Assembly: GCF_963921235.1 (NCBI RefSeq)
Contig: NC_086117.1
Span: forward strand, 18,166,001-18,230,000
Length of the DNA stretch: 64,000 nucleotides
From: Mobula hypostoma
Taxonomy: Eukaryota
Direction: 5' to 3'
The notes under the pieces are model-generated. The model ran no database searches and was not told where the DNA came from. It saw only the letters and a list, made by a program, of their open reading frames with translations. Below, piece by piece: positions 2,675-63,555 of this stretch; positions within the stretch are counted from its first letter, which is position 1; each line of letters starts with the position of its first letter. The position numbers were made by a program, and so were the translations under genes.

Positions 2675-2772
2675 GTGTAAACCATGGAGTGAAGAAGCTT
2701 AAGCATTAGTTAATCTAATAATTCCCCATAACATGGAAGACTCATTAATATCTTTGTATATTTGTACCCCAG

Positions 2773-2937
2773 TCCCACCATCAATTGCAGATGATTCTCC
2801 AGATATCACTGTCACTAAAATGTCCCCAGTGGTGCTAACGTGTCATGTGACTGGAATCCCTGCACCTTCAGTGACTTGGATAAAGGATGGAGCCCGACTG
2901 GGGAACCGAGGGCCAGGATACAAAGTGCTGCCGACAG
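2773..2937 (+). CDS. hmcn2: Hemicentin exon, Ig domain A N-half
   Basis: cccag|tc...acag|gtttgt; [55 protein letters not shown]; phase 1-1. Confidence 0.93.
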
Positions 2938-32900: not shown

Positions 32901-34733
32901 TTAGCTTGTTTATTTCGGCTTTTTTCTTAAAGATGTGCTGGGTGCTCTCCGGCTACCGCTGCACCCCTGCACGCTTCGCGGCCCGGTATCGGTCCGCAGC
33001 CCGGAGGTTGGGGACCACTGGACAGCAGCAGAAGACCACAAACATACACTCAGTGTATGTTATTAGTGTACTCACTGTACTTTATTGGATATAGTGGCCA
33101 CTTTATTACACTGGTACATGGAGCTTAGAAAAATAGGGGGCTATGTGGTAGGGAAATTCTAGGCGGCTTCTAGAGTAGGTTACATGGTCAGCACAACATT
33201 GTGGGCTGAAGGGCCTGTAATGTGCTGTAGATTTCTATTTTTCTATAGTAGGTACCTAAGTAAGTGGCCACTGAGCATATACTCTGCCCTTCTATCATTC
33301 CAGCCAGTTAGAATGTAAGACATAGGAGATAAATTAGGCTCTTTGATACATTGAGTCTGCTCTAGCATTCAATCATTATTATCGTTCTCAACCCCATTCT
33401 CCTGCCTTCTCTCCATAACCCTTGATGCTCTTTCTCTTTCCCCAGTGCATGGAGGGTTCTCCGAGTGGTTAGACTGGGGGCCGTGCAGTGTCACCTGCGG
33501 CAGAGGTGTAGAAGAGCGAATCCGACTGTGTAACAACCCCTCACCTGCCAATGGAGGGAGATCATGCCATGGAGTGGATGTTGAGTCAAGACAATGTAAC
33601 GCAGATCCTTGTCAAGGTAAATATAAAGAGCCACCATTGGTTTATAATGGCCTCTTGGTTAAAGTATAATTCAAGTGACCAAGGCTTATACACTATAGGT
33701 TTTCTACATCCCAACTCTGCTCAAATTGGTGGTAGTTGTTGAGAAAGGTTCAAAAGCTTGTTTTATAGCGCCATCTACTGGCCTGAACTGCAACAACATC
33801 ATTGTGGGGCATCTGTTCACACCTTGGATTTCCTTTCTAAATGTTTACATGGTGTTAAACACAAGAGATTCTGCAGGCGCTAGAAACCCAGGGTAGCGCA
33901 CACAAAACACTGGAGAAACTCAGCAGGTCAGGCAGCATTTATGTGTTGTGTGTCCAAAGATGATGAACAGAAATCGAGAAGTTGGATACAGTCGAGTGCT
34001 TTAAATAAAATGTGGCGTTATGCACTTAGTATCTTACCCTTTTCTCTTTTGGAGGTGCTGATATTGACACCTCAAGAAGATAGCAGCAATCTTTAAGGAC
34101 CCCCACCAGCCAGTACATGCCCCCTTCTCACTACTACCATCAGGGAGGAGGTACAGGAGCCTGAAGACACACATTGTGTTTTAGGGACAGCTTCTTCACC
34201 TCTGCCATCAGATTTCTGAATGGTCCATGAACCTATGAACACTAATTCACTATATTAGCTTCCTTTTTGCACTATTTAGTTGTTATTTTATATATATTTC
34301 TTATCGTCATTTATAGTATATTTCAAGTGTATTTTATATACCACTGTCATAAAACAACAAATTTCACAGCACCAGGAAATCTGCAGATGCTGGAATTTCA
34401 AGCAACACACGTCAAAGTTGCTGGTGAACGCAGCAGGCCAGGCAGCATCTCTAGGAAGAGGTACAGTCGACATTTCGGGCCGAGACCCTTCGTCAGGACT
34501 AACTGAAAGAAGAGCTAGTAAGAGATTTGAAAGTGGGAGGGGGAGGGGGAGGTCCGAAATGATAGAAGAAGACAGGAGGGGGAGGGATGGAGCCAAGAGC
34601 TGGACAGGTGATTGGCAAAAGGGATATGAGAGGATCATGGGATGGGAGAAAGAAAAGGGGAGGGGGGAAACCCAGAGGATGGGCAAAGGGTATAGTGAGA
34701 GGGACAGAGGGAGAAAAAGGAGAGAGAAACTAA

Positions 34734-34764
<31 letters not shown>

Positions 34765-37700
34765 CGGATGGTTTATGAGGGGGAGGTGAGGCATTAGCAG
34801 AAGTTTGAGAAGTCAATGTTCATGCCATCAGGTTGGAGGCTACCCAGACGGAATATAAGGTGTTCTTCCTCCAACCTGAGAGTGGCTCCATCTTGACAGC
34901 AGAGGAGGCCATGGATAGACATATCAGAATGGGAATGAGACGAGGAATTAAAATGTGTGGCCACTGGGAGATCCTGCTTTCTCTGGTGGACAGATTTCAC
35001 AATATTTCAGTGGTAATAAACCTGACTCTGATTCTGTTGCAAGGGACAGGTTTAATGTCTGGCTGAATTCCTCAGATACCTAACATCCCTGTTCAATCGC
35101 AAACTTCACCAGGAATTGTCAGTAACAGGACTTTAGAACTGGTCCTGACCTTGTCCACACCAAGAGCACACCTTCCAACAAGAGGTAGGTGGGGTGGGGG
35201 GGGGGGGTTGGATGTCAGACTGATCTCTGATAGGTTCAGTCGGAACCAATCTGGTATCCTCCTGCTCTGACGTCACTGGGAGTACAGCCAGTGTTCGCGG
35301 TTCCCAGCAGGCATCTGTTGAGCCGCTGAAAGATTCTGATTGGTCACCGATTCCCTGTCAGTTAGTGGGCAGTGGTCCGGCTGGGGTCTGTGGTGAGAAT
35401 GTTTCAGGTCACTGGCATGTGGAATTGCAGTAACCCACTCCCGGAATTCTGTCTTCTGTCTTCAGTAGATTTAGTAGCCACAGGTCCAAAGTTCAAAGTA
35501 AATGTAGCATCAAAATACATATATGTCGCATATATGTAGTATATATATATAGTAATACATATAGTATATCAAATACATATACTACCCTGAGATTCACCAT
35601 AGAACAAAGAAATACAACAGAATCAATTAAAAACTACACACTAATCAAAGATGAACAAACAATCAAAATAAGACAAGCTGTGCAAATACAATGATAATAA
35701 TAATAATAGATGGATGGATGATACTGAGAACATGAATTGCAGAGTACCTGAATGTGAGTTGTAGGTTGTAGAATCAGTTCAGTGTTCAGGTAAGTGACGT
35801 TGTCCACGCCGGTCTGGCGCCTGATGGTTGCAGGGTACGTATTGTTCTTGAACCTGTTGCTGTAGGACCTAAGGCTCCTGTACCTCCTTCCCGATGGCAG
35901 CAGTGAGGAGAGAACAGGGCCTGGATGGTGGGGGTCCTTTATTATGAATGCTGCTTCTTGAAGCAGTGTTCCTTCTGCTTAAAGGTCAGTCGGTAACTAG
36001 CCGACAGATAATGGAGATGGTACAAGCTTGTGTAGAGCAGATGCAGTTGGTGCTGCTGACTGCCCAGGATATGCATTCCCAGTCTTAGCCTTAGTACAGC
36101 TAGGGTGGACCCTGGGGGGGCAGATATTCCAGGAAGAGAAACCTGCAGGTTTGGTCTCTTCCAAACTCCACCCTCTGAGACTCTGCAGATTGTTGTTGAA
36201 TCTCAGGAGCAGGTCCGGTAGAGTTCCTGCAGTTCTTTGCATGGCCTTGGGATGTCCGTGACAGTACATTCTTTGAAGTACAGTCACTCCTGGGATATCG
36301 CTGACGTGGCAGCCAGCTTGTGCATTGCAAGCCCCACAAGCAGCAATCAGTTTGAGAGTCACCCAGAGAACGTTCAGTGACAAGTGGGCGACACCATAGC
36401 CGGGAGGGATGAAGGAGATCAGAATCACAATCAGGTGCATTATACGTCATGAAATTTGTTGCTTTGTGGCCGCAATGCAAGAAATAAAAATGATTATAAA
36501 TTATAAGACAAATAAATATGCAAAAGAGGAATAGCAAGTTCGTGAACTGTTCAGAAATCTGGAAGATGAAGATGAAACTGTTCCTAAAACGTAGAGTGGG
36601 GGAGGTTGGGCTTCAGGCTCCCTGATGGGAGAAACGGGAAGAGGGCATGTTCCGGATAGTGAGGGTCCTGAGAAACGGGAAGAGGGCATGTTCCGGATAG
36701 CGAGGGTCCTGAGAAACGGGAAGAGGGCATGTTCCGGATAGCGAGGGTCCTGAGAAACGGGAAGAGGGCATGTTCCGGATAGCGAGGGTCCTGAGAAACG
36801 GGAAGAGGGCATGTTCCGGATAGTGAGGGTCCTGAGAAACGGGAAGAGGGCATGTTCCGGATAGCGAGGGTCCTGAGAAACGGGAAGAGGGCATGTTCCG
36901 GATAGCGAGGGTCCTGAGAAACGGGAAGAGGGTATATTCCGGATAGTGAGGGTCCTGTGAAACAGGAAGAGGGTATGTTCCAGATAGTGAGGGTCCTTAG
37001 TGATGGATGCTGCCTTCTTGAGGCATTGCCTTTTGAAGGTGTCCTTGATGACGGTGGTGTAGTGGTTAGCACGACGCTTCACAGTACAGGTGACCCGGGT
37101 TCGATTCCCACCACTGCCTGTAAGGATTTTGTATGGTTTCCCCTTGACCAGCGGGTGCTCCAGTTTGCTCCCACAGTCCAAAGACGTACCGGTTGGTAGG
37201 TTAATTGGTCACTGTAAATTGTCCCGTGTTTGGGCTTGGAATAGATCGGGGGATTGTTGAGTGGCGCGGCTCGAAGGGCCGGAAGGGCCTATTCCGTGCA
37301 GTACCTTAATGAATAAAATGAGGAAAGTTGTGCCTGTGATGGAGCCAGCTGGGTTTACAAGCCCTGCAGTCTTTTACCATCCTGCACATTGGCACCTCCA
37401 CACCAGGAGGTGATGTAACCAGTCAGAATGCAATCCCCTATGCAGCTGTAGGTTTTGCAAGGAGTCTTCGGTGACATACCAAATCTCCTCCAGCTCCTAT
37501 TGAAGAAGAGCTGCTGGTGTGCTGGCTTCGTGGTTGCAGCAATGTGTTGGACCCAGGATGGACCTTCTGAGATGGTGGTGCTGTTAACCTGGAGGTACTG
37601 ATGGCGTTGCTTTGTCTTGGCAGTGAATGGGAGCTGGGCTTCCTGGAGCTCCTGGAGCCCGTGCAGTAGGACCTGTGGGGGCGGGCAGAGCAAGCGCTAC

Positions 37701-40700
37701 CGATCGTGCAGCAACCCACCTCCGGCCTGGGGCGGCAAGGCTTGCTCAGGGCCCGATGTACAGATGCAGAGATGTGGCATGGAACTGTGCCCAGGTGAAT
37801 GGAGGGGGGGGCAAGATGGGCGACAGGGTGGCGACAGAAATGATCGAGGGAGGGATGGTGGGATGGTGAGATTGGGGGAAGCAATGGCAGGAAAGTGGGA
37901 AGGGGGTGGTGAGGGCCTGGTCGGGGGAGGGGCTGTGGAGGAATGAAAAGGTTGGGGTTGAGGGGAATCAGAGAGAGGATATTTAGATGGAAGAATAGTA
38001 AGGTGGTGAGGTTGAGTAGGAGAATGGTGAGCAGTGGGGGAATGGTGGGTTTGTGGAGAGGTTAGTGGGGTTGGTGAATTGGTGAAGTGGGAATGGTTGG
38101 GAAAAAGGGAATAGTTGGGGGGGAGAGGAACAGTCGGAGAGGGGAACAGTAAGGGGAAGGGGAACGGTGGGGGGCGGGGGAGACGGTGGGGGGCAGGGGG
38201 AACAGTTGGGGGAAGGGGAATGGTCGGGGAGAGGGGAACATAGCATGAACATTGACTTTTCAAACTTCCGCTAATGCCCCACCTCCCCCTTGTACACCAT
38301 CAGTTATTTATTTATTTATATACACACATTCTTTTTCTCTCTCTCCTTTTTCTCCCTCTGTCCCCCTCACTATACCCCTTGCCCATCCTCTGAGTCCCCC
38401 CCGCCCACTTTTCTTTCTCCCTGGGCCTCCTGTCCCATGATCCTCTCATATCCCTTTTGCCAATCACCCGTCCAGCTCTTGGCTCCATCCCTCCCCCTCC
38501 TGTCTTCTCCTGTCATTTTCAAATCCCTTATTAGCTCTTCTTTCAGTTAGTCCTGATGAAGGGTCTCGGCCCGAAACGTCAACTGTACCTCTTCCTAGAG
38601 ATGCTGCCTGGCCTGCTGCGTTCACCGGCAACTTTGATGTGTGTTGCTATCATTACCATATCTTCAACTGCAGACCGACAGCCATGTGTTGGGCTGTAAG
38701 CGGCAGTCTGTCATGGCCCAACAAGTCACTCTGCCAAAGGAAAAATTAGTAATTAAGGGTCAAAGATCAACTGTACTCGCCATACATTTACAGTGTAGGA
38801 ATTTGTTGCGGTGTGTTGGTGGGACATGTAACAAAAGCACCATCATCAGCAATTATAAAGAATTATATAAAAATAAAGTCAGATGTTAAAGTACAGATCT
38901 GGAATAAAATGTGCTTCAGTACATAAATACCAGTATGTATTTACAATATAAACAGCATAATTGGAAGTGGTGTAAAGTGCTTACAGTGCAGTGACTGAGA
39001 TAATAAATAGAGGGGGGTGGGGAGGCTAACTAGAAAGGTTGACCAGATTAACTGCTTGGGGGAAGAAACTTTTAAGATGGCATGAAGTTTTTTTTTTAAT
39101 AGCCCTATAGCACTTCCAGAAGGGAGCTTTTTTGGAAAAGGTAGTTAGCTGGGTGGGTAGTCACTACAATGATTTTTTCTCCTACCATTCATCCCTCCCC
39201 ACTAATCTTCCTCCTGGCACATATCCTTGCAAGCGACCAAAATGCTACACTTGCCCATTCACTTCCTTCCTCACCCCCATTCAGGGACCCAGACAGTCCT
39301 TCTAAGTGAGGCAACACTTCACCTGCGAATCTGTTAGGGTCGTCTTTTGTATCCGGTGCTTCCAGAAAGCAGCTTTTGGATAAGGTTTGTCGGGTGGGTA
39401 GCGTCAACAGTGGGTTTTTTCCTGACCATTTCCTTGTCCTGGACACATGCAAGTCCTGCAGTGATGGTAGACTGTGGCCTAGGGTAAATCCCAGGGTAGA
39501 GACATCCCAAGATCAAATAGAAGTTAAACTTGGGGGCTGTAGTTGTACGGACCAAGTGTAGAAGACTGGGATTTACAGTTCTGTTTCCCCATTTTGTTAA
39601 CTGTTGATTGTGTGAACATTGTCTGTGGCAGTGAATGGAGCGTGGAGTCCCTGGCAGCAATGGAGTGAGTGCTCAGCCTCCTGCGGAGGGGGCAAGCAAC
39701 TGAGGCAACGGCGATGCAACAGTCCTCCGCCGAATGCCAAGGGAAGACCCTGTCCCGGAGAGAGCGCTGAGTCTGTCAGCTGCGGCCTGCGTTCATGCCC
39801 AGGTGTGTGAGAGTGTGTGAAGCAGTGGGCCAACTTGTACACACGGCAGGCCCGGCTTCCATTCTCGTATGTTAGTGTGTCTGCAGGGAAGTAAGCCGGG
39901 ACCAGTTTCTATCCAAGCGTTATCGGCTTTGAGTTAGACTCCTATAGACTTTAATCCATGATCCAGGCCAACGTTCCCACAACAGGCCTAAGCGGATAGG
40001 AACTGTTAACTATTGTAAAAATGACACACTAAGGACATAAACAAATAGAAGAAACAATTTGTTTTGTCACATGGTTCTCATTCATAATAACATCATTTCT
40101 GATTTTACAGATGAACCCAATTGCCCACCCAATCTTCTTTCAGGTCCATGAGTTTTGTTTTCTGTCGGAGAGGGAACATCAACTCAGACCATGAGAGGCC
40201 TGCGTCGGGCATTTTCATGCCTTACAAGGCGCAGATTGGAACCCTGTGTGGGACGCCACTCCTCACACAGACACTAGAGCAATGTGTGGTTAAGTGCCTT
40301 GCTCAAGGACACAAACACGCTGCCACAGCTGAGGCTCGAACTAGCGACCTTGAGATAACTAGACGAACGCCTTAACCACTTGGCCATGTGCCCAACAGGT
40401 GTTTTCTGTTGACTGCACATCAACATTTCTGTATTGTCCACTGACATGGATATTTCAAAAGATCCCAGTCTCCCGATCTAGACATCAACTAGTTATAGTC
40501 TCTCAATGGTGGGAGACTTAAGGAAACTATGTTGACTTTGGCCTATTTTATCATGTGCCCCCAAGTTTCCTGACACCTCAACCTTATAGTGGGCTCTACC
40601 ATCTTTCCAAGCGGTGAAGTCAGGCTCACTGGCCGATAATTTCCTTTTTTTCTGCCTCCCTCCCTTCTTAAAGCGTGGAGCAACATTCTGGGTGTTTGAA

Positions 40701-49700: not shown

Positions 49701-52700
49701 CTAAGGGGTAGGTCAACAAACCTGGCCTGAAGGCAATGGCTTAATCACTGGATATGGTGAGATGTTTAAGTCCTTCTTTTTATGAGTAAATCTCCTGCTA
49801 AGTTTTTGTTTGCATTCCTGTTGTATGTTTCAGATTCCAAAGGAGATCAGTGTCCCAAGGGATTTTTACTTGACTCAGCCTTGTACTGTGCAGGTAAGTT
49901 CTTATTGTTATGAATGCTTAGGGGAGGTTGTCAGCTGGAACTCCACTTGCCTCAAGGCCTGCTTACGTATTCAAGTTGTGCAACTGTCGTGGAGACCAAC
50001 ATAATTCCAAAGCCGCTTACCATTCCTTCACTGTCTAAAGCTGGGGTTCCCATGGACCAATACGATTAACCAAGGGACCCCTAGTCTAAAGTAATTGTCT
50101 GCAGAAGCTGACGTATTTGTGAGAGAAAAGGAGTCTTTCTCTATCCCCGTCTCTGGGAATCAATGCGGAGTGGATTTGGGCTTCAGGACTCGCCAGACTG
50201 AGGGATTCTGGGATACTGTAGGGAGGCGGCACTGAGGTAAAAGGTCATCCATAGTCTTATGCAATGGCAGAACAGACGTGAAAGATGGAATGGTCTGTTC
50301 CTACTTTTGTTTCTATTGTTTCTGTAGTTTGGCATCAACAAGTTACCAGTAAGTACATGTTTACATCTTTCTAACAATCAGTCATTAACATCAAATTCGT
50401 AGCTGTGGTGAGAAGAGAATAACGTCCCTTCGACGCAGTAGGAGACACTGTTTCAAAGCACCTTATGGAATGGGGTGTGTGAACTATTGATAGGACAGCT
50501 GAGACATGATCAAACAGTGTTCCATACCCCTTGCCAGTATTATATTGATTACAGGTTGTGGGTGACACTGGTACAGCCACATTTCTTTCCCCTCGCCAGC
50601 CGTGCTTTGAAAGGGTCTTATCCCTGAACACTCAAGGCATTGAATTGGAAATGGTCTATATTTGTCACATGTACTGGAATACAGTGAAAGGCTTGCACGA
50701 CGCACTGCAGGCCCATCTGCCCATAATGTTGTGCTGACCCTTTAAACATACTTCAAGATCAATCTAACCCTTCCCTCCCACATAGCCCTCCCTTTCTCTT
50801 TCATCCATGTGCCAATCTAAGTCATAGAGTCAAAGATAGAGCACAACAGCATGCCTAGTCCATGCTGAACTGTTACCTTGCCTCGTCCCATCGACCTGCA
50901 CCAGGACCATAGCCTTCCATTACCCTCCCATCCATGTACTTATCCGAACTTCACTTAAACGTTGAAATTGAACCCACCTCCTCTGGCAGTTCGTTCCACA
51001 CTCACACCACCCTCTGAGTGAAGAAGATCCCCCTCTGGTTCCTCTTAAATATTTCACCTTTCACCCGTAACCTATGACCTCTAGTTCTTATTTCATCCAA
51101 CCTCAGTGGGAAAATCCTGCTTGGATTAACCCTATCCATATCCCTCATAATTTTGTAAACCTCTATCAGATCTCCCCTCGTTCTCCTACGGTCCAGGGAA
51201 TAAAAGTCCTAAACTATTCAACCTTTCCTTGTAATGCAGGTCCTCAAGTCTGAGCAACATCTTAATACTTTTTCTGTTCTCTTTCAATCCTATTGATATC
51301 TTTCTTGTACGTTGGTGACCAGAAATGTGCACAATATTCCAAATTTGGTCTCACCAATGTCTTAAACAACTTCAACATAACATCCCAACTCCAATACTCA
51401 ATATTCTGATTTAAGAAGGCCAATGAGCCAAGAGCTTTCTTTATGACCTTAACTCTTTATGTCCCCAACTGTAGCTTGCCTCTACCATCACCCTTGGTAG
51501 AGTGTTCTATGCACTTACCACTCTTGGTGTAAAACACCTAACTCTGATGTTCCCCACTATACTTTCCTCCAATCGCCTTAAGATTATGCCCTCTTGTAGT
51601 AGTCAATTCTGCCCTGGAATAAAGATAGGCTGTCCACTCTGTCTATGGCTCTTATCATCTGATACATGCCTATCTTGTCACCTTTGGGTGGCGGGTGGGG
51701 ATATGTCTCTACCAAGGTAGGTGTAAGGTGCTCCTTCCCTCCCTGCAGATCACTCTTGGGCAAAGTGTACCACCTGCTTAGCCCCACAATCAGGGTTGCG
51801 TGAACCCGTGGGAGCAGGTGGTGGACGGTCATATAAGCAGTGCACATCACAAGTCCTGGTTATGCGACCACTGACGCCAGGCAGACAATCTCTGAAGAGT
51901 ATTGATAATGGCTAGGGTCACCCGTCTTGTAAAGACACGGCCCAGAAGAAGGCAATGGTAAACCACTGCCAAGAACAGTCATGGTCACGGATAGAGAAAG
52001 GGAATGGCAGTGTGAGGGGGTTCCACCCCACAGGCAGCAAACCCTCGCACATTAGGGATAGATGTAAGTCCATGATTGCCTATGTCATACGACATGGTAC
52101 ATAATGACGATGATGATCTTGTCACCTCTCACCCTTCTTCGCTCTAAAGAGGGAAGTCCAGGCTCACTCAACCTATCATACAGATCAGATCATTACACGG
52201 AGCACTGAGGTAGAACGAGGTGAAACAATAACAGAATGTGGAATAAAAGTGTAACAGCTGCAGAGAAAGTGGAGTTTAGGTAAATAATAAGGTGCAGGAT
52301 CATAACAAGCTGGAGTGAGATCGAGGGTTCAATTTATCTCCCAGTAATGATGGAAAAAGTAGTGACTCAGTAATGATTAAATAGTTAAAGGTGTGTGTGC
52401 AAATCAGCATGTGGGACCAGGAGGGGAGGAGAGAACTGATGGCATTCCTGCACCATTGCTCCTATCAGTCCTCTCGGTGGTAAAGGCTGCAACAATGGAC
52501 TGCTTAACCTACTGGAAAAAGATCAACATCTTCCTGAATTTTTGATCTGGCCACAGGTCCCCCTTGCTTTCTTTTATTTCTGTGAGAATTGGGACTTCTC
52601 TAAAGTCTGTTCACTGGTCCTTTGCCTTGGCTGTTCCCACCTGGCTCACTACCTGCTGCCGTGTCCTTGTGTTACCCAGAGAGTAGAACCGGTCTTGTGT

Positions 52701-55700
52701 TCCTGTAGAGACGCGGAGGGTATCTTCTCCTCCTCTGTCCACAGGCTTTCCACTGAGAATTATCCGTGTAACTGAAGAGCTCCATGTGTCTCAGCACTAT
52801 GGATTTTGGGAATAGTGAGTGCCATGGGCCGGAGAGGGTGCCCATAGTGTCGAGACTGATTTGTGAACGTGGGCTTCTGAAAGCCAGAGGCACTGAACTT
52901 ACAACAGAGGAGCTGCAGCTTCTCTGAAGAGCACCACGGTAGCGTGGCGGTTAGTGTGACGCTGTTACAGCTTGGGGCACTGGAGTTCAGAGTTCAGTTC
53001 CAGCGTCACTTGTAAGGAGTTTGTACGTTCTTCCCGTGACAGTGTGGGTTTCTCCAGGTGCTCTGGTTTCCTCCCTCAGTCCAAAGACCTATTGGTTAGT
53101 AGGTTAATTGCTAATTGTCCTGTGATGAGGCGAGGGTTAAATAGATGGTTTACTGGGAGACACAGCTCATTGGGACAGAAGGACCTGTTCTGTGTGGTAT
53201 CGCTAAAATAAAAAGTGAAAAGAGCTGGCCAGTTGGTCTGTGCTGGTGTTCGTCCCGATGCTGATGTTGTGGCTCAGAATTATTTTTTTTTATTTTAAGG
53301 TTCGTAGGGACAGCACGGGGGTCAGGTGGCAGGTTAGGGTTAGAGGTCAGGGGCAGTAGAGTCTGGGCGGGAGCCAGTATTTGGAGCACTCTGCAGTCAA
53401 AGGTCAGTGATCCTGGAGGATGGGTTGGCAGGCGCTGAGGGTGGAGACCAGTGATCCCCAGATCAGTGAGCCCCGGACTGGAGGTTCATACAAGCTGAAG
53501 TCAAGGTGGCTGGTAAACCCACCCCCCCCCCCCAGATCACTGGGCTTGGAGGTTTGTGTCAGTCCAGAAATAGCAGCCCGAAGATCAAACCCAATGATCG
53601 GCAAGTCCTGGGTCAAGACCCAGAGGTCTTTGAAGTCGGAAATTGGAGCCCCAGTGTCTGAGAGTCTACAGCAGAGGGCTGGAGGCTCAGATTGGAGGCC
53701 TGCCTATGTGTGTGAGTGGCTGGCTGGATGGGTAAGAGGGTGGGTGGGAAAGAGGCCTGTTTTTGCTGTTGTTTGTGTTGTTCTGCTGAACATTTTGGCC
53801 ATTCTAAGTGACACTTGCAGGCTGCCTCCAGCACATATTCAGACTATGCTGATCGCCGGTGCAAACGATGCACTTCAACTGTATGTTTTGACGTACCTGC
53901 GATAAATAAATCTGAATCTGAATCTCATCTGATTCCATCTCCTCACCATTTCGTAACACTGTTGTTTTCTTTCTGTTTTCCGTTCTGTTGGCAGATGTGA
54001 ATGAGTGCCAGCTTGGCACCCACATGTGTCACGTTGGCCAGGACTGTCAGAATGAGGTGGGCTCCCACCGCTGCCTGCTGCGTTGTGGATCCGGTTTCAG
54101 GCGGTCTGTAAGAGGACCGGGTTGTGAAGGTACTGTGCGTGTTAACCATCTGTCAGGAAAAATTGATCCAATGGTAATGAACTGGTGGATCACAGAACGA
54201 TGGGGTGTACTGCCCTCACATTTGTCCCTCAAGATTAGAGTGGGTCATCAGCCCAACCTTGTCTCCTTGTTCTTCCCCATTTGGCTTCTGCCTGCCTTTC
54301 TCCCTCTCGCACCATATATCTTCAGTATTCCTATGACCCCTCTTCCTTTCTCAACCCCCACCTTTTCCTCCATTCGCCCCCTTTCTTGATGGCTCTCAGT
54401 ACTACACTGCAGCCCAGATGTCTGCAGTGGGACTTGACCCTCAAATGTTAACTCAGAGGTGAGACCCTGGAGTTTCAGCAGACTTTGCAAGGAGTTCATT
54501 GCATGGAGTAATCATTGTACTCAAGGGCAATCTTATTACCTTCACCTCGTTAATGCAAATATCTAATCAGCCAATCATGTGGCAACAATCAGTTCATAAA
54601 AGCATGCAGACATGGTCATGAGGTTCAGTTGTTGTTCCAAGCAAACATCAGAATGGGGAAGAAATGTGATCTAAGTGACTTTGATCGTGGAATGATTGCT
54701 GGTGCCAGATAGGGTGGTTTGAGTGTCTCAGAAACTGTTAATCTCCTGGGATTTTTACAGACAGCAATCTCTAGAGTTTACAGAGATTGATGCAAAAAAT
54801 GAAAAAAACACCCAGCGAGCAAAAATGCCGTGATAATGAGAGAGGTCGGAGGAGAACGACCAGACTGGCTCTATCTGACAGGAAGGTGACAGTAACTCAA
54901 TTAACAACATTTTTCAAATTACAGCAGTGGTGTGCAGAAGAGCATCTCTGAACACACATAATCAAACCTTAAAGCGAGTGGGTTACAGTGGCAGAAGACC
55001 ACAATCATACACTCAGTGGCCACTTTATTAGGTACCTCCTAAATCTAATGAAGTGGCCACAGAGTGCAGTTCACTATTTTGGTTCTTATTTTTGAAATGT
55101 TAAGCTGAAGGAGTGTGTAGCAGCAGGTTTTCCAACCGAGGAGTAAGTTCAGACCCAACCCTGGCCCTGATCCAGCTTGCCTGAGGACCACATCTACTCG
55201 ATTACTCACAGGTCAGGAAGGATATTTGCCTGATCTTCCTTCTTGTCTTCTTGCATGATGTCTCGTCACTGTACAGGCCAAAATCAAACTGGACCTCACT
55301 CTAAACTTCAAAGTTCAATGTAAATTTATTATCAAAGTACATATATGTCACCAAATACTACCCTGAGAATCAATTTCTTTCAGGCATTCACAGCAGAAAA
55401 AAAGAAATGCAATAGAGTCAATGGAAAACTACACACAAAGGCTGACAAGCCACCAATGTGCAAAAGAAGACAAATTGTGTAAATACAAAAAGTAAATAAA
55501 TAATTAAATAAATGTGCGACGAAGAGGTGTAGAGTCATTGAAGGTGAATCCATAGGTTGTGATCAGTGATCAGTTCAGTGTTGAGGTGAGTGAAGTTATC
55601 CTCGCTGGTTCAGGAGCCTGACGATTGAAGGGTAATAACTGCTCCTGAACCTGGTGGTGTGGGATTCCAAATCACCTGTACCTCCTTCCTGATGGTAGCA

Positions 55701-58700
55701 GCAAGAAGAGAGCATGGCCTGGATGGTGGAGGCCTTGTCGATGGGTATTTCCCATACCTGGAAGTCACTGACATAGGACAGCACTGGATGAGCAGAGATT
55801 TTTAACGTCAATTTCTCTCTGCATTTTTGCTTCTAGATGTTGATGAATGCAAGGAGTCGGGCAGCCCTCCTTGTCATCAGCGGTGCCTCAATGCCATTGG
55901 TACCTACTGGTGTGCGTGTGAGGCTGGTTACCAGCTCTTGGGGCAGCGTTGTGTCGGTGAGTATCTGCTCCATTTGCCAAAGTCTGTCTTCAATTCTGTT
56001 TTGATCTGTCCTTAATAAAGCTCCCAATAAAAATAGAAACTCACAGGCATTTATTCTGGGATGCACAGATCCACATGGACTGGACAACAGGGAACCCATG
56101 GTCAGTGCCAGAGTTGATGCTCCTCGCAAGCTTCCTCCCCTCAGTATATCCGTCTGATCCTTTTCCTCCAACATCCATTAATTGATTTAATTTAGAGATA
56201 CAGCCCAGGAACAGGCCCTTCCTGTGCAACAAGTCCTCACTGGCCCTGTGACCAATTAACCTACTAACCCATATGTCTTTAAAATGTGGGAAACCAGAGC
56301 ACCCAGACAGAACTGATGAAGTCACAAGGAGAATGTACAAGCGCCTTATAGACAGTGGCAGGAACTATCGCTACAGTAGAATAGCTCCTGTGACTGGGCT
56401 ATTGATTCCCAGCTATCATGACCATTGTCCTTTGTGTGTGATATGACCCTGACCACTGGAGTATTTCCCCTTGATTCCTACTGACTTGGGTGTTACCTTG
56501 GCTCTTTGTGCAACACCAGATCAAAAGCTCTCTCAATGTGATGCATATTTGACCCGAAGCCATGATACTTAATGGGGTCTCGAGTTGAGGATACTGAGAT
56601 ACACTTTTCCACCAGGATGGTCGAGCGAGTCATAAAGACCAGCATGGACCAGTTGGGCCGAATAGCCCATTTCTGTGCGGTATTAGCTATATAATCCTAC
56701 ACAGACGCACGAAAGAATTTAAAAGCAGAAACTGGGGTGTTGGATCAAAGACGAGCCTGAACCACCCTGGTCTTTCCAATCCCAGATATCAATGAATGCA
56801 ACATGAATGTCTGCCACCCAGACCAGGATTGCCAAAACACTGAGGGAGGGTACCACTGCACCGAGAGCTGTCCTCGCGGCACCATCCGGCTACCCAGTGG
56901 AACCTGTGGAGGTAAGTACCACGCCTCAGCTCTCCAGCCGTCAGTACAAGGCACTTCCCTGGTCCAACCACTCAGCTGTGTTTTGGCTTCATTTCTTTTT
57001 GTCCTGAATCTTTTTGCTACTGGTTTATATACTGAAATACAGTGAAAATCTTGTCTTGCATACTGCTCCCACAGATCAATTCATTACACAGTGCACAGAG
57101 GCAGAACAAGGTAAAACAATAACAACGCAGAAGGAAGTGTAACAGCTATGGAGAGCATGCAGTGCAGGTCAACAATGAAGCACAAGATCACAGCGAGGTA
57201 GACTGTGAGGCCTAGAGCCCACCCTATCGTACTTGGGCCCGCAATGAGGTGTTGCTGCCTTGAGGGAGTGGTCACACTGCTGCTCTCTATAATCTGCGGT
57301 TATTCAGGGCTGCTGTCCATACACAACATACACAGTCTCAGTCCTCCTGTTTGCTCACCGGCCTGTCCTCACTCTCCATCCGACAACGTCTCACGATTTC
57401 GAAGTTCAGCGTCCCCCGAGGTCTCCATCTCCCCTTCAACTCCACACTTCTGTGTTCCTCCAGTTTGGTCCTGCATGTCTAGTCCCATCGACCTGCACTT
57501 GTACTATCGGTCTCCATATCCCTCCCATCCATGCACCTATCCAAATCTCTCTTAAATGTTGAAAATGACCCACTTTTGCTGGCAGCTTGTTCCATAATCT
57601 CACCACCATGGATGAAAAAGTTCCTCCTCATGTTCCCCTTAAACATTTCATCTTTCATCCTTGACCCATGACCTCTAGTTCTAGTTTTACTCAGACTGCT
57701 TGCATTTATCCCAACTATACTCCTCATAATTTTGTACAGTATATGTCTATCAAATTTCCCCTCAATCTTTTACCTTCTAGGGAATAAATTCCTAACTTAT
57801 CCAATGTTTCCCTGTAACGTAGTTCCTTGAGTCCCAGGAACATCCTTGTAAATCTTCTCTACACTCTTTCAATCTTATTTCCATCTTTCCTGTAGGTAGG
57901 TGATCGGAACTGCACACAATACTCCAAATTAGGCCCCACCAACATTTTGTACAATTTCAACATAACATCCCACCATCATCGATTATGAAGGCCAATGTGT
58001 CAGAACTTTCTTTATGATCCTATTTAGCTGTGATGCCACTTTCAAGGAATTATGCATCAATGTTCCCAGATCCCTCTGTTCTATGGCACTGTTCAGTGCC
58101 CTACCACTCACCCTGTAAGACCTGCTGTACCCTGGTTGGTCCTCCCAAAGTGAAAAACCTCACACATTAAATTCCACCTGCCATTTCTCAGCCCATTTCA
58201 CCAGCTGGTCCAGTTCCTTTCAAGCTTTGATAGCCTTCCACGCTGTCCACTACATCCTCAATCTTAATGTCATCCACAGATTTGCTGATCTGGTCAACCA
58301 CGTTATTGTCCAGATCATTGATCTAGATCACAAACAACAATGGGCCCAACACCAATCCCTGTGACACACCACTAGCCACAGGCCACTAATCAGAGAGGCA
58401 ACGATCTACTACCACTGTCTGGCTTCTTCCTTGAAGCCAGTGTCTAATCTAATGTACTACCTCATCTTGAACGGCAAGCAACTGAACCTTATTGACCAGC
58501 ATCCCATGCGGGACCTTGTCAAAGGCCTTGCTGAAGTCCATGTAGACAACATCCACTGAGTTGTATTCATCAACTTTCCTGGTAACTTCCTCGAAAAATT
58601 CAGTAAGATTAGTTAGACATGACTAAGCACATACAAAGCCATGTTGACTAATTCTAATCAGTCCCTGTCTATCCAAATAATTATATATCTGGTCTCTTAG

Positions 58701-61700: not shown

Positions 61701-63555
61701 GTGGTGTAGTGGCATCAGCACGGGACTTTGAAGCGAATGATCCTGGGTTCGAATCCGGCCGGATCCTTGCACGCTTCCCATCCATGTTGGGTTGAGCGTC
61801 GAGCTAGCAACTCAGCTTCAGAAAAGAAAAGTCAAATGCTACAGGAATGTCAAAAATGCCGCCCGATGCATGAACAGGAACAGCAACAACGATAATAGGT
61901 CTAGTTTACAGTGTTTGATGAGCTTAATGTGTACATCTTTGGAGTGTAGGGCATAATTGGTTTGTTATGAGATACACTGAGATACAGAGAAGGGAACGCA
62001 TGCAAGTCACAGGGAGAACATGCAAACTCCACATGGACAGCACCTGAAATCAGGGATGAACGCAGGTCTCTGGCACTGTAAGGCAGTGGTTCTATTTACT
62101 GCACATTGTGCAAGCTGATAGACTCATAGAGTAATAGAAAAGTACAGCCCTACCTGTAAGACCTACCCTGGGCTAACTAATCCCACCTTTTACCTTTCAG
62201 CCACTGAGGAATGTGGATCATTCCTGTCCACCGAGCCTTTGTCTCTCCTACATCCCTCTCAGCCTCTTCTGCTCCAACAAAAACAACTTCAGCCCAGCCG
62301 GACATCTCCATTGCTGACAACAGCCTTGTTCATCTCTGCATCCTGCCCACGGTTAGTCTTGTTACTGTGTGGTCACCAGAACTGCACAAGATGGGCTTGG
62401 CTCTCTATACTTCCACCATCGTGTTCCTGCTCTCATGCTCTAAGGCCATATGGCCTTTGATTATTGGAATGGAAGCGCAGGAGACCGCATTTGCTGGAAT
62501 CTGCCCACCCCACCTCCCATATTGGGCTCCAGACTTCAACTGCATATCCAATCAGATTCCAGTCCTTTGTTGCCTCCACCTATCACCTGCCGGCCTCTGT
62601 TGCTATTCCCGTTCTTCCCTCCTCCATCCTCCTCCCAGCCATCTCACCCAGATCCACACATCACTTGCAGGCTCGTGCTCCACCCCTTCCCCATAAGACC
62701 ATAAGACAAAGGAGCAGAATTTGGCCGATCGAGTTTGTTCTTGGCTGATTTATTATCCCCCTCTATCCCATTCTCCGGCCTCCTCCAGGTAACCTTTGAT
62801 GCCCTGACTAATCAAGAGCCCTTCAACTTTCACTGTAAACATAGCCAATGACTTGGCCTCCACAGCCATCTGTGGCAATGAATTCCACAGATTCACCCAC
62901 CCTGTGGTTGAAGAAATTCTGCCTCACCGCTGTTCCTACGGGACATCCTTCAATTCTGAGGCTGTGGCCTCTGATCAGAGACCCCGCCAGTAGGGGAAAC
63001 ATCCACTCTATCTAGCTCTTTCAATATCCGATGGGTTTTAATGCACTCCCCCCTCATTCTTCTAAACTGTAATGACTGTACCATCAAACTTTCTTCTTGT
63101 GTTAACCCTTTCATTCCCAGGATCATTCTCGTGAACCTCCTCTGGATCCTCTCCAGTGCCAGCACATGCTCTCTTAGATCAGGAGTCCAAAACTACTCAC
63201 AGTGCTCCAAGTGCAGTCATGCCAATGCCTTATAAAGCCTCAGGATTATATCCTCGCTTTTATTTCCCTTCTGCTTTTATACTGGCCGTCTGCTCTGTCT
63301 CCATCAGTCCTAGTACGAGGACTACCCATCTCCCTCCACAGATGCTGCCTGACGCTCTGTGCTCTTCCAGCACCTCGTTCGTGGCTCCTTCCTTCCGGGT
63401 TCTCTCACTGATATTCCTTTCCATAGACGTTGACGAGTGCAAAGGAGGGACCCACATGTGCCGCTACAACCAGAAGTGTGAGAACACGGTGGGCAGTTAC
63501 CGCTGCAGTTGCCCTCGGGGCTACCGATCGCAGGGCGTGGGAAGACCATGTCTGG
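2773..63555 (+). CDS. hmcn2: Hemicentin gene model, partial 3' part, 23 exons (HMCN2-like, carrying HMCN1-like TSP1 repeats): Ig x7, TSP1 x3, G2F, cbEGF x4
   Basis: Exons join in frame via GT-AG sites: 2773-2937,3232-3339,7180-7317,9126-9254,12879-13148,14669-14859,18206-18419,21666-21794,24715-24905,26895-26976,30721-30990,33446-33616,37624-37794,39632-39802,43062-43211,44055-44192,46094-46215,48647-48884,49834-49893,53995-54129,55837-55956,56786-56911,63427-63555. The Ig-TSP1-G2F-EGF order is diagnostic of hemicentin. [28 protein letters not shown] and ETEALRF favour HMCN2 over HMCN1 (recalled sequences; paralog call about 0.7). Confidence 0.9.
3232..3339 (+). CDS. hmcn2: Hemicentin exon, Ig domain A C-half
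   Basis: tctag|ga...caag|gtaaat; [36 protein letters not shown]. Confidence 0.93.
4340..4635 (+). mobile_element. tRNA-derived SINE
   Basis: B-box-like gggttcaatttcc, body shared with many copies in the window, tail aaagctaatctttaaatct. Confidence 0.7.
4906..5400 (+). mobile_element. Non-autonomous Tc1-derived element
   Basis: agtggccactt ends and a remnant transposase N-terminus ([13 protein letters not shown]...[12 protein letters not shown]); other copies at 15058-15640, 32186-33260, 54540-55066. Confidence 0.8.
6264..6817 (-). mobile_element. Short non-LTR retroposon (RTE-associated SINE-like), inserted in another repeat
   Basis: Flanked by direct repeat acacgtat; interrupts the caagttcaagttcaag-tailed repeat; family call tentative. 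Confidence 0.55.
7180..7317 (+). CDS. hmcn2: Hemicentin exon, Ig domain B N-half
   Basis: ttgcag|aa...aaag|gtgagg; [46 protein letters not shown] (frame absent from ORF track). Confidence 0.92.
9126..9254 (+). CDS. hmcn2: Hemicentin exon, Ig domain B C-half
   Basis: ttccag|ga...caag|gtaacg; [43 protein letters not shown]. Confidence 0.92.
9509..10949 (+). mobile_element. Tc1/mariner DNA transposon (IR/DR type), defective
   Basis: About 212-bp terminal inverted repeats (9509-9722 and 10739-10949, caaaccccatttcc...ggaaatggggtttg) with TA on both flanks; transposase inside. Confidence 0.95.
9741..10732 (+). pseudogene. Tc1 transposase, frameshifted, DD34E with E to G
   Basis: ORFs 9741-10049 (HTH, GRKP) and 10004-10732 ([21 protein letters not shown]); 34 residues from the second D to the gga codon at 10544. 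Confidence 0.92.
11045..11455 (-). mobile_element. Interspersed SINE-like repeat
   Basis: Second copy at about 30205-30630 with high similarity. Confidence 0.7.
12879..13148 (+). CDS. hmcn2: Hemicentin exon, Ig domain C
   Basis: ttcag|tg...caag|gtgaga; [28 protein letters not shown]...[25 protein letters not shown], 270 nt. Confidence 0.95.
14669..14859 (+). CDS. hmcn2: Hemicentin exon, Ig domain D N-part
   Basis: gcag|tt...atg|gtaggt; [30 protein letters not shown]...GELIVENAM; phase 1-0. Confidence 0.93.
15058..15640 (-). mobile_element. Non-autonomous Tc1-derived element
   Basis: Reverse-complement copy of 4906-5400; ORF 15318-15506 reads [28 protein letters not shown]. Confidence 0.8.
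17625..17940 (+). mobile_element. Old DeuSINE (SacSINE1/AmnSINE1-like) remnant
   Basis: ctgtcagaggtactttctttcagatgggatgttaa...aaagatcccatagctctgttttgaagg resembles the Deu domain (recalled); related pieces near 5990-6120 and 15720-15790. Confidence 0.55.
18206..18419 (+). CDS. hmcn2: Hemicentin exon, end of Ig D and start of Ig E
   Basis: cccag|cca...acag|gtaagt; [18 protein letters not shown]...[27 protein letters not shown]...NNKPIT; phase 0-1. Confidence 0.94.
19985..20400 (-). mobile_element. CR1 LINE 3' fragment
   Basis: ORF 20192-20395 [28 protein letters not shown] is the CR1 ORF2 C-terminus. Confidence 0.85.
21180..21545 (-). mobile_element. SINE-like retroposon with (GAT)n-type tail
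   Basis: Same family as 44790-45170 and 51684-52115. Confidence 0.7.
21666..21794 (+). CDS. hmcn2: Hemicentin exon, Ig domain E C-half
   Basis: AAG acceptor (gaaag|ct), donor aaag|gtaaga; [43 protein letters not shown]; 5' boundary inferred from frame. Confidence 0.88.
22745..22940 (+). mobile_element. tRNA-derived SINE
   Basis: A box tagcatagctg, B box gagttcaattcc, shared body; tail-to-tail with the next copy. Confidence 0.7.
22945..23376 (-). mobile_element. tRNA-derived SINE with internal tandem expansion
   Basis: Reverse SINE body (gggaggaaaccggagcacccagaggaaacc) containing the 40-bp array. Confidence 0.75.
23021..23220. repeat. 40-bp minisatellite, 5 copies
   Basis: Unit ccccagcctaatcacagggcaatttacaatgaccaattaa, nearly identical copies. 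Confidence 0.95.
24125..24600 (-). mobile_element. CR1 LINE 3' fragment
   Basis: ORF 24145-24342 [19 protein letters not shown]. Confidence 0.8.
24715..24905 (+). CDS. hmcn2: Hemicentin exon, Ig domain F N-part
   Basis: ctcag|ag...gtg|gtgagt; [31 protein letters not shown]...[10 protein letters not shown]. Confidence 0.94.
25010..25430 (-). mobile_element. CR1 LINE 3' fragment
   Basis: [33 protein letters not shown] in ORF 25110-25613. Confidence 0.8.
25575..26440 (-). mobile_element. Penelope-like element fragment (GIY-YIG C-terminus plus 3' region)
   Basis: [29 protein letters not shown] motif; purine-rich 3' region ending in the ctgctggaaatccagag tail. Confidence 0.75.
26895..26976 (+). 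CDS. hmcn2: Hemicentin exon, Ig domain F C-part
   Basis: gacag|aat...caaa|gtaagt; [27 protein letters not shown]. Confidence 0.93.
28229..28759. mobile_element. 531-bp non-autonomous hAT transposon
   Basis: TIRs tagggttgcca / tggcaaaccta, perfect 8-bp TSD actgtgtt, subterminal tgtccc repeats. Confidence 0.9.
29165..29945 (-). mobile_element. Penelope-like element fragment
   Basis: [45 protein letters not shown] in ORF 29536-29835. Confidence 0.8.
30721..30990 (+). CDS. hmcn2: Hemicentin exon, last Ig domain (G)
   Basis: ggcag|gt...caag|gtggga; [30 protein letters not shown]...[25 protein letters not shown]. Confidence 0.95.
31330..31960 (+). mobile_element. CR1 LINE ORF2 internal fragment
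   Basis: [13 protein letters not shown] and [27 protein letters not shown]. Confidence 0.75.
32406..33020. mobile_element. hAT-like foldback MITE carrying a LINE fragment, nested in a Tc1-derived element
   Basis: cagtggtccccaacc / ggttggggaccactg ends; inverted arms of about 120 bp (32406-32523 vs 32885-33020); core 32525-32720 is a Rex/Babar-like RT remnant. Confidence 0.85.
33446..33616 (+). CDS. hmcn2: Hemicentin exon, TSP1 repeat (matches HMCN1 repeat 1)
   Basis: cccag|tg...caag|gtaaat; [57 protein letters not shown]; 171 nt, phase 1-1. Confidence 0.95.
33767..33794 (-). promoter_or_regulatory. Predicted CTCF site with upstream motif
   Basis: Minus strand gtTGCAGTtcaggCCAGTAGATGGCGCt: core fits CCASYAGRKGGCRS, TGCAG upstream; non-repetitive context. 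Confidence 0.65.
34375..34995 (-). mobile_element. Penelope-like element fragment, young
   Basis: [58 protein letters not shown]; includes (TAAA)n at 34731-34762. Confidence 0.85.
35362..35449 (+). pseudogene. Fossil TSP1 exon (repeat 2)
   Basis: ccctgtcag acceptor, then in phase 1 [16 protein letters not shown], an internal deletion/frameshift, then NCSNPLPEF; in-frame TGA, 3' half and donor gone. Confidence 0.75.
36418..37050 (-). mobile_element. Rex1/Babar-like LINE 3' fragment
   Basis: [25 protein letters not shown] motif and cagaatc-type tail; related fragments at 34060-34370, 35485-35965, 37320-37600, 55305-55740, 63615-64000. Confidence 0.7.
36629..36997. repeat. 41-bp minisatellite, 9 copies
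   Basis: Unit gagaaacgggaagagggcatgttccggatagcgagggtcct. Confidence 0.97.
37052..37318 (+). mobile_element. tRNA-derived SINE
   Basis: A box tgtagtggttag, B box ggttcgattcc, shared body, aatgaataaa tail. Confidence 0.85.
37624..37794 (+). CDS. hmcn2: Hemicentin exon, TSP1 repeat (matches HMCN1 repeat 5)
   Basis: ggcag|tg...ccag|gtgaat; [57 protein letters not shown]. Confidence 0.95.
38240..38648 (+). mobile_element. Penelope-like element 3' fragment, inverted relative to 34375-34995
   Basis: Reverse complement closely matches 34400-34825. Confidence 0.85.
39632..39802 (+). CDS. hmcn2: Hemicentin exon, TSP1 repeat (matches HMCN1 repeat 6)
   Basis: ggcag|tg...ccag|gtgtgt; [57 protein letters not shown]. 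Confidence 0.95.
40170..40395 (-). mobile_element. tRNA-headed CORE-like SINE
   Basis: Minus strand has B-box-like agttcgagcct and ccttgagcaaggcacttaacc. Confidence 0.55.
40798..42795 (-). mobile_element. CR1 LINE, 5'-truncated 2-kb copy with well-preserved RT
   Basis: ORFs 42599-42874, 41947-42591, 41166-41993, 40890-41165: [45 protein letters not shown]; a few frameshifts. Confidence 0.95.
43062..43211 (+). CDS. hmcn2: Hemicentin exon, G2F (nidogen G2) domain part 1
   Basis: ttgcag|gt...atcg|gtaggt; [50 protein letters not shown]. Confidence 0.92.
43745..43870. repeat. Degenerate (CT)n microsatellite
   Basis: Direct inspection. Confidence 0.85.
44055..44192 (+). CDS. hmcn2: Hemicentin exon, G2F domain part 2
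   Basis: ttctag|gc...acag|gtgagt; [46 protein letters not shown]. Confidence 0.93.
46094..46215 (+). CDS. hmcn2: Hemicentin exon, G2F domain part 3
   Basis: ctcag|gc...aag|gtgagt; [41 protein letters not shown]. Confidence 0.93.
46845..47885 (-). mobile_element. CR1 LINE 3' fragment
   Basis: [19 protein letters not shown] and [19 protein letters not shown]. Confidence 0.88.
48647..48884 (+). CDS. hmcn2: Hemicentin exon, G2F domain part 4
   Basis: catag|gat...aaag|gtgagc; [22 protein letters not shown]...CNHTVVYE...[15 protein letters not shown]. Confidence 0.93.
49834..49893 (+). CDS. hmcn2: Hemicentin 60-nt linker / half-EGF exon
   Basis: tttcag|at...gcag|gtaagt; [20 protein letters not shown]; phase 1-1. 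Confidence 0.88.
50820..51450 (-). mobile_element. CR1 LINE 3' fragment
   Basis: Same 3' end as the 19985 and 46845 copies. Confidence 0.75.
51684..52115 (+). mobile_element. Complete SINE-like retroposon with 12-bp TSD
   Basis: TSD atcttgtcacct (51672-51683 and 52116-52127), (GAT)n tail, nested in a CR1 tail. Confidence 0.85.
52680..52779 (+). pseudogene. Fossil cbEGF exon (first EGF after G2F)
   Basis: ttacccag acceptor; [11 protein letters not shown], frameshift, C-P-TGFPL, then aac tga aga g (N-C*-R); DxDEC start and GT donor lost. Confidence 0.65.
52930..53212 (+). mobile_element. tRNA-derived SINE
   Basis: ggtagcgtggcggttag A box, shared body, aaaataaaa tail. Confidence 0.75.
53995..54129 (+). 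CDS. hmcn2: Hemicentin exon, cbEGF
   Basis: ggcag|at...gaag|gtactg; [45 protein letters not shown]. Confidence 0.94.
54540..55066 (+). mobile_element. Non-autonomous Tc1-derived element
   Basis: Copy of the 4906-5400 family ending in the cactcagtggccacttt...aagtggccacagagtg palindrome. Confidence 0.8.
55837..55956 (+). CDS. hmcn2: Hemicentin exon, cbEGF
   Basis: ttctag|at...gtcg|gtgagt; [40 protein letters not shown]. Confidence 0.94.
56786..56911 (+). CDS. hmcn2: Hemicentin exon, cbEGF
   Basis: cccag|at...ggag|gtaagt; [42 protein letters not shown]. Confidence 0.94.
57470..61440 (-). mobile_element. Near full-length decayed CR1 LINE (ORF1 Zn-finger/SGNH esterase plus ORF2 APE-RT)
   Basis: ORF1: [35 protein letters not shown]; ORF2: [39 protein letters not shown]; many stops and frameshifts. 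Confidence 0.92.
61689..61890 (+). mobile_element. Complete tRNA-derived SINE with (CAA)n tail and 11-bp TSD
   Basis: A box tggtgtagtgg, B box ggttcgaatcc, TSD gataataggtc; related minus-strand copy at about 27300-27470. Confidence 0.88.
62690..63245 (-). mobile_element. CR1 LINE 3' fragment
   Basis: [24 protein letters not shown] in ORF 62950-63165. Confidence 0.8.
63427..63555 (+). CDS. hmcn2: Hemicentin exon, cbEGF
   Basis: catag|ac...ctgg|gtgagt; [43 protein letters not shown]; gene continues beyond the window. Confidence 0.95.

Follow-up and report, generated by a model that had tools for sequence, protein, structure and literature searches.

A hemicentin-2 gene from a stingray-like ray and the probable pruning of its TSP1 repeats

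Hemicentins are described in the literature as proteins built from VWA, Ig, G2F, EGF and FC modules, with two vertebrate paralogs, HMCN1 and HMCN2. The 64-kb stretch of DNA analysed here (the window) carries part of such a gene with three TSP1 repeats between its Ig array and its G2F region, and it raises an obvious question: which hemicentin is this, and were its other repeats lost from the genome, skipped in splicing or never there? Our answer is that the window very probably represents the 3' third of the HMCN2 (hemicentin-2, fibulin-8) ortholog of a stingray-like ray, read on the plus strand and descended from an ancestor with six TSP1 repeats (T1 to T6), and that T2, T4 and the cbEGF module EGF1 were lost in this lineage.

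The gene in the window

One large plus-strand gene runs across the window and past both of its ends, with no flanking gene inside it, in sequence without a single N run over the whole 64 kb. From 5' to 3' its modules are the last Ig exons, T1, T5, T6, G2F, a linker and EGF2 to EGF5, as set out here in window coordinates.

2703..30989, plus strand: 11 Ig (I-set) exons of the C-terminal array, colinear by tblastn with the HMCN2-type proteins of Pristiophorus and Heptranchias at 62-96% identity; approximate HSP bounds 2703-2948, 3231-3338, 7173-7325, 9116-9253, 12866-13147, 14668-14922, 18200-18457, 21662-21793, 24684-24905, 26895-26978 and 30723-30989
33446..33616, plus strand: TSP1 exon T1, 171 nt, phase 1-1; Pfam TSP_1, E 8e-16
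35361..35449, plus strand: decayed TSP1 exon T2 (pseudoexon), from the TSP1 HMM, tblastn and the T2 HMM
37624..37794, plus strand: TSP1 exon T5, 171 nt, phase 1-1; Pfam TSP_1, E 8e-14
39632..39802, plus strand: TSP1 exon T6, 171 nt, phase 1-1; Pfam TSP_1, E 6e-14
43055-43213, 44051-44197, 46087-46215 and 48647-48883 (approximate bounds), plus strand: four exons of G2F (nidogen G2 beta-barrel), 72-81% identical by tblastn to shark HMCN2-type proteins
49833..49892, plus strand: short linker exon after G2F with a CPxGFxLDxxxYC motif, 70% identical by tblastn to Pristiophorus and Heptranchias, E 3.5e-7
53995..54129, plus strand: cbEGF exon EGF2, placed by the module map, 135 nt, phase 1-1; Pfam EGF_CA, E 2e-11
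55837..55956, plus strand: cbEGF exon EGF3 (PCHQRC type), 120 nt, phase 1-1; Pfam EGF_CA, E 1e-9; 75-78% identical to shark HMCN2 EGF3
56786..56911, plus strand: cbEGF exon EGF4 (NVCHPDQ type), 126 nt, phase 1-1; Pfam EGF_CA, E 1e-5; 74-83% identical to shark HMCN2 EGF4
63427..63555, plus strand: cbEGF exon EGF5 (CRYNQ type), 129 nt, phase 1-1; Pfam EGF_CA, E 3e-12; 88-98% identical to shark HMCN2 EGF5

The N-terminal VWA domain, EGF6-8 and the fibulin C-terminal module lie outside the window, which holds just the last part of the long tandem Ig array that precedes G2F; two of the 11 Ig exons match Pfam I-set at E 2e-20 and 6e-19. All three TSP1 exons carry the W-x-x-W motif and the conserved cysteines and score 52-58 bits with Pfam PF00090 (cutoff 21.6), while EGF2, EGF3 and EGF5 reach 39-47 bits with PF07645 (cutoff 27). 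EGF4 scores 25.9 bits against that same cutoff of 27 when translated without its first five codons, and the full exon begins DINEC, a D-x-D/N-E-C start. Each of these seven exons lies between an AG acceptor and a GT donor, opens with the second and third bases of a codon and has a length divisible by three, so that all are phase 1-1; 33446 and 63555 are exact exon ends. Pfam, the splice sites and the boundaries therefore agree with a first-pass annotation of this DNA, which had reported three TSP1 and four cbEGF exons, all phase 1-1, and whose listing lacked the four G2F exons and the linker exon in between.

The introns hold a good deal of repetitive sequence. A Tc1/mariner-type transposase remnant (9914-10726, plus strand; Pfam DDE_3, E 2e-12, with HTH_Tnp_Tc3_2) lies in an intron of the Ig array, and intronic pieces of LINE-type retrotransposon sequence (RVT_1, E 2e-15, with a weak endonuclease/exonuclease/phosphatase match) are found on the minus strand at 41169-42591 and 59997-60449. 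The T1-T5 intron contains, at 36629-36997, where T3 and T4 would have lain, a 41-bp minisatellite of nine copies with 96% matches, whose minus strand gives a long repetitive open reading frame that is not a gene. Interspersed repeats of very high copy number occupy 33830-35030, 37030-37230 and 38230-38630, with summed contig depths of 1e4-1e6 across DNA runs of several related species and presumed RNA runs, and a near-identical inverted repeat pair, one member at about 33940 and the other at about 38586, accounts for many joints between opposite strands.

Which hemicentin, and which repeats?

All nine cartilaginous-fish orthologs that we found by protein search bear the NCBI name 'hemicentin-1-like', and this naming speaks for a reading in which we are dealing with HMCN1, or with a third member of the hemicentin family, and the loss then falls outside hmcn2. 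We regard that reading as exceedingly unlikely. In a maximum-likelihood tree of 26 whole G2F regions, rooted on Branchiostoma (lancelet), Glandiceps (acorn worm) and Ciona, HMCN1 and HMCN2 are split at 100/100, and the window gene falls across that branch from HMCN1, in the HMCN2 clade and inside a cartilaginous-fish HMCN2 group supported at 100/97, whereas the HMCN1 proteins of Stegostoma, Heterodontus and Mobula, the three cartilaginous fishes that represent HMCN1 in the tree, sit in the opposite clade. The first-pass annotation had called the gene HMCN2-like, proposing a G2F phylogeny as the check and naming beforehand a clustering with HMCN1 as the outcome that would speak against it; the tree contains no such clustering. 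In addition, sharks and rays, including Chiloscyllium plagiosum, own a separate HMCN1 with six repeats, and between the Ig array and G2F the window gene has, instead of T1 to T6, an intact T1, T5 and T6 and a broken T2 only.

Similarity searching points the same way. When the fourth G2F exon (48647-48871) was searched against 1.84 billion representative proteins, it matched a catshark fragment at 73% identity and the HMCN2 proteins of most tetrapods and bony fishes found (lungfish, axolotl, Astyanax and bat hemicentin-2, and an Amia model) at 49-55%, against 40% for HMCN1; the bichir (Polypterus) and hummingbird (Heliangelus) HMCN2 models gave 43-45%. The Amia model, which is labelled HMCN1 protein, joins the HMCN2 clade in the G2F tree. 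Judging from the G2F tree or from closest similarity, then, the cartilaginous-fish 'hemicentin-1-like' proteins and this one Amia 'HMCN1 protein' are misnamed HMCN2 proteins. The window protein itself is 93% identical to that of Hypanus sabinus, 84% to Leucoraja, 73-76% to full-length shark models and 62% to a fragmentary S. torazame model.

The three TSP1 exons can be typed individually. In a maximum-likelihood tree of 88 single TSP1 repeats, in which every HMCN1 type from T1 to T5 has a starred clade of its own and the T6 clade has 76/84 support, exon 33446-33616 falls in the T1 clade and exon 37624-37794 in the T5 clade, both at 100/97. The third exon, 39632-39802, groups at 95/89 with the final TSP1 repeats of HMCN2 from sharks and the coelacanth, and together they join HMCN1 T6 at 76/84, which makes for a moderate assignment to T6. 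Type-specific HMMs trained only on HMCN1 repeats lead to the same typing, with 107 bits for T1 on the first exon (73 for the next type), 86 bits for T5 on the second, clearly over the runner-up, and 76 bits for T6 on the third (against 61), so that tree and HMMs alike agree with the earlier assignment of the three to HMCN1 repeats 1, 5 and 6.

How do these three compare with what other hemicentins carry? Counted with an HMM made from HMCN1 repeats, six TSP1 repeats are present in 12 of the 12 HMCN1 proteins checked and in the hemicentins of Branchiostoma, Glandiceps and Lingula (a brachiopod). Scored by type, the outgroup repeats run from T1 through to T6 in sequence, completely in Lingula and almost completely in Branchiostoma and Glandiceps, from which it follows that six position-specific repeats are older than the vertebrates. 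T3 is missing from every HMCN2 model examined, and the repeats that HMCN2 does carry are given below; those of other species are counts from automatic gene models, some of them LOW QUALITY or partial, in which a skipped cassette exon would mimic loss, and the check at the DNA level covers the present locus only.

T1, T2, T4, T5, T6: Pristiophorus, Heptranchias and Chiloscyllium punctatum (gene models)
T1, T2, T5, T6: Cetorhinus (gene model flagged low quality)
T1, T4, T5, T6: Scyliorhinus canicula, Mustelus, Leucoraja and Latimeria (gene models)
T1, T5, T6: Hypanus (gene model) and the present locus
T5, T6: Narcine (gene model)
T1, T4: two salamanders (gene models)
T1 only: lungfish, bichir, sturgeons, paddlefish, Megalops, Astyanax and Silurus (gene models)
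No TSP1: Molossus (bat), Heliangelus (hummingbird) and a partial Amia model (gene models)

These subsets are not nested, with rays keeping T5 and T6 and tetrapods and ray-finned fish keeping T1, and on the accepted phylogeny that pattern calls for many independent losses of HMCN2 repeats, perhaps roughly ten as counted from the gene models. The Narcine bancroftii model, which is also without T1, contains about 80 non-homologous residues between linker and EGF2, probably a retained intron, and it may be that this model is faulty rather than the gene unusual. Taken together, the survey largely supports the first-pass interpretation: six repeats in HMCN1, none in mammalian HMCN2 (zero in the Molossus model, the only mammal checked), an ancestral layout with all six, as the three ordered invertebrate sets indicate, and pruning that went its own way in each lineage, as seen in HMCN2 models with five, four, three, two, one or no repeats.

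The EGF modules deserve the same treatment. When the tails of 18 proteins were split into modules, a common plan emerged for HMCN1 and for almost every full-length HMCN2 model from outside the mammals, consisting of linker, EGF1 to EGF7, and EGF8 with the fibulin module, on which the four exons in the window are EGF2, EGF3 (PCHQRC), EGF4 (NVCHPDQ) and EGF5 (CRYNQ). EGF3 and EGF4 are missing from the Molossus HMCN2, the sole mammalian model checked, and present in nearly all non-mammalian HMCN2 models, in keeping with the first-pass view that the two are not known from mammalian HMCN2. The description of a 'distinct EGF subset' was overstated, because EGF6-8 lie beyond the window; what is there is the ordinary non-mammalian EGF2-5, without EGF1.

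It is this absence of EGF1 that is the unusual EGF feature here, the linker exon being followed by EGF2 some 4.1 kb downstream. An EGF1 HMM run over 49893-53993 gave no plus-strand match over shuffles, and a single 10-residue match on the minus strand at 4.1 bits (shuffle maximum 2.9). According to regular-expression signatures and tails inspected by eye, the models of Hypanus, Leucoraja and S. torazame share this linker-to-EGF2 junction, and those of S. canicula and Chiloscyllium have tails of a length consistent with it, while two squalomorph sharks, Pristiophorus and Heptranchias, keep EGF1.

Loss, decay and the alternatives

Are the other repeats really gone? A TSP1 HMM was scanned in six frames, with stops as X and against shuffled sequence, over the four introns between the last Ig exon and G2F (30990-33444, 33616-37622, 37794-39630 and 39802-43054), and just one match rose over the shuffles: 35361-35423 on the plus strand, at 9.0 bits (shuffle maximum 4.7). 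It begins at profile position 1, immediately 3' of a retained CAG acceptor, and it is also the top tblastn match beyond the known exons on either strand, to Pristiophorus HMCN2 T2 (30.8 bits, E 9e-6), with the T2 HMM as its best type model at 21-28 bits. The reading frame is interrupted by an in-frame TGA inside the W-E-E-C motif and by a two-codon insertion, then by a deletion or frameshift into a CSNPLPEF remnant that ends at 35449, and the 3' half is missing. This is a true T2 pseudoexon, left broken where it stood, so at least one repeat loss proceeded by decay in situ. Contigs of two related species covering the region differ by about 1.5% and 6%, like the surrounding intron. No remnant of T3 or T4 rose over shuffles in the same six-frame scan of the four introns.

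Two weaker candidates were discarded. A tblastn match at 37843-37908 (22.7 bits) is G-rich low-complexity sequence and is without HMM support, and a putative cbEGF fossil at 52680-52779 scores -4.2 bits with the EGF1 HMM, below the median best shuffle of -1.1, is absent from tblastn and is best put down to chance. The first-pass idea that fossils are still readable at this locus thus survives for T2, which stands over the shuffles, but not for this cbEGF candidate.

Public contigs mapped onto 33430-39429 tell us how the transcript deals with the pseudoexon. A 907-nt contig from a run with the same organism label, the RNA status of which is a guess, matches 33444-33614 and then, without a gap and with 0 mismatches, 37622-37794; allowing for the shared AG, the contig joins T1 to T5 by splicing at the GT-AG sites that had been predicted, with the pseudoexon skipped. 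So precise a removal of an intron is hard to explain otherwise than by splicing, and as one spliced contig it represents one isoform and is compatible with minor ones. As for the T1 exon, its nine listed differences from a DNA contig of a related species (species C) all lie at third codon positions, 9/9, and 8/9 are synonymous, a tally of listed differences from a contig that has 24 overall, up to four of them outside the listing; this suggests that the exon is under purifying selection.

Might the pattern then reflect splicing or annotation, with T2, T4 and EGF1 exons still present in the genome and skipped in some isoforms? In its favour, exon skipping classically affects cassette exons of phase 1-1, repeat numbers in other species were counted in gene models, and the transcript contig shows one isoform. 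Against this, the six-frame scan of four introns contains no intact extra TSP1 exon, the broken T2 being its only signal, the interval from linker to EGF2 has no plus-strand trace of EGF1, the window has no assembly gaps and the independent Hypanus model shows the identical layout. We therefore consider this explanation very unlikely in general and, at the present locus, already refuted unless the assembly is wrong.

An assembly artefact, in which near-identical tandem exons had been collapsed or a segment dropped, is itself barely credible. The T1-T5 intron, with its high-copy repeats and its 41-bp minisatellite of nine copies, is the kind of place where one would look for such an error, yet identity between TSP1 types is only about 40-50%, so collapse is not to be expected, and the spliced contig (from a separate run with the same organism label, RNA by guess) matches the exon junction exactly. 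Moreover, contigs of related species B and C cover a large part of the stretch between T1 and T5, the pseudoexon and the flanks of both exons among it, and show no extra sequence there, their only gaps falling at the high-copy repeats. Hypanus, too, has the same architecture.

A last possibility reverses the direction of change, supposing that HMCN2 began repeat-poor and that duplication, or conversion from HMCN1, later gave repeats back to sharks, rays and the coelacanth. Nothing specific favours it, apart perhaps from the mutual closeness of the T5 and T6 types in the per-repeat tree, and we rate it very unlikely indeed. HMCN2 repeats are sister to the HMCN1 repeats of the same position and are not nested within HMCN1 of the same species, their order is always ascending, the outgroups already have T1 to T6 in order, and the T2 pseudoexon is direct evidence of decay. 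We infer that the change was a loss and not a gain.

Pruning by loss would have run as follows. The ancestral hemicentin would have had six position-specific TSP1 repeats, each in its own 171-nt phase 1-1 exon; HMCN1 would have kept all six throughout, HMCN2 would have lost T3 and then further repeats according to lineage, and in the present lineage T2, T4 and EGF1 would have gone, T2 leaving a broken pseudoexon that the spliceosome passes over. Exon shuffling offers the necessary background, in that symmetric phase 1-1 exons can be removed without breaking the frame, and with one module to each such exon either deletion or splice-site decay keeps the frame. Loss was presumably tolerated because a complete TSP1 block is not needed for HMCN2 function, and the likeliest reason why HMCN2 tolerates it and HMCN1 does not would be that, once the gene had duplicated, the functions relying on TSP1 fell to HMCN1.

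Place among known hemicentins

Read together with the public gene models, the locus suggests that HMCN2 has repeatedly and independently shed single-module, frame-neutral exons, and that the mammalian HMCN2 layout, with no TSP1 and no EGF3/4, would be a derived end state. A bolder proposal, which we hold at about even chances, is that HMCN2 forms a natural deletion series from a six-repeat block that predates the bilaterian divergence and is unaltered in HMCN1, a series with some ten or more independent removals in differing orders, in which rays keep T5/T6, tetrapods and ray-finned fish T1 and amniotes none, with a datable T2 pseudoexon at the present locus. Should the gene models be borne out by genomic DNA, TSP1-dependent function would have gone to HMCN1 alone after duplication, and the deletion series, if true, would be a comparative map for finding the role of each repeat. 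More practical uses lie in annotation, in understanding how giant modular matrix proteins change and in choosing constructs for testing the hemicentin TSP1 block. The hemicentin papers that we read yielded no description of HMCN2 TSP1 content or of its variation.

Set beside HMCN1/fibulin-6, the gene shares module types and exon logic, with repeats homologous to T1, T5 and T6 and EGFs homologous to EGF2-5 of HMCN1; unlike it, HMCN1 has retained EGF1 and the full six TSP1 repeats in each vertebrate checked, with its G2F in the other clade. Mammalian HMCN2/fibulin-8, represented by the Molossus model of 5070 aa, belongs to the same G2F orthology group and has the same plan of Ig array, G2F, EGF and fibulin-type modules, but it has no TSP1 and is without EGF3 and EGF4 while keeping EGF1, whereas the ray locus has T1, T5, T6, EGF3 and EGF4 and is without EGF1. 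The HMCN2-type proteins of Pristiophorus japonicus and Heptranchias perlo are orthologous, colinear across the whole window at 62-98% identity per exon and in the same G2F clade, but differ in keeping T2, T4 and EGF1, and so have five TSP1 repeats.

Closest of all is the RefSeq 'hemicentin-1-like' protein of Hypanus sabinus (the Atlantic stingray; 5382 aa), which is 93% identical over 606 aa and matches the window gene in its T1-T5-T6 block and in a linker that leads straight to EGF2, with no EGF1; it differs in being an automatic, misnamed and undescribed gene model from another species, at 7% amino-acid divergence. The architecture is thus already in a public RefSeq automatic model, and public models suffice to trace the graded series. 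What the locus adds is neither a new kind of gene nor a new mechanism; it is a lineage-specific variant of a known family, in which modular pruning has proceeded exon by exon.
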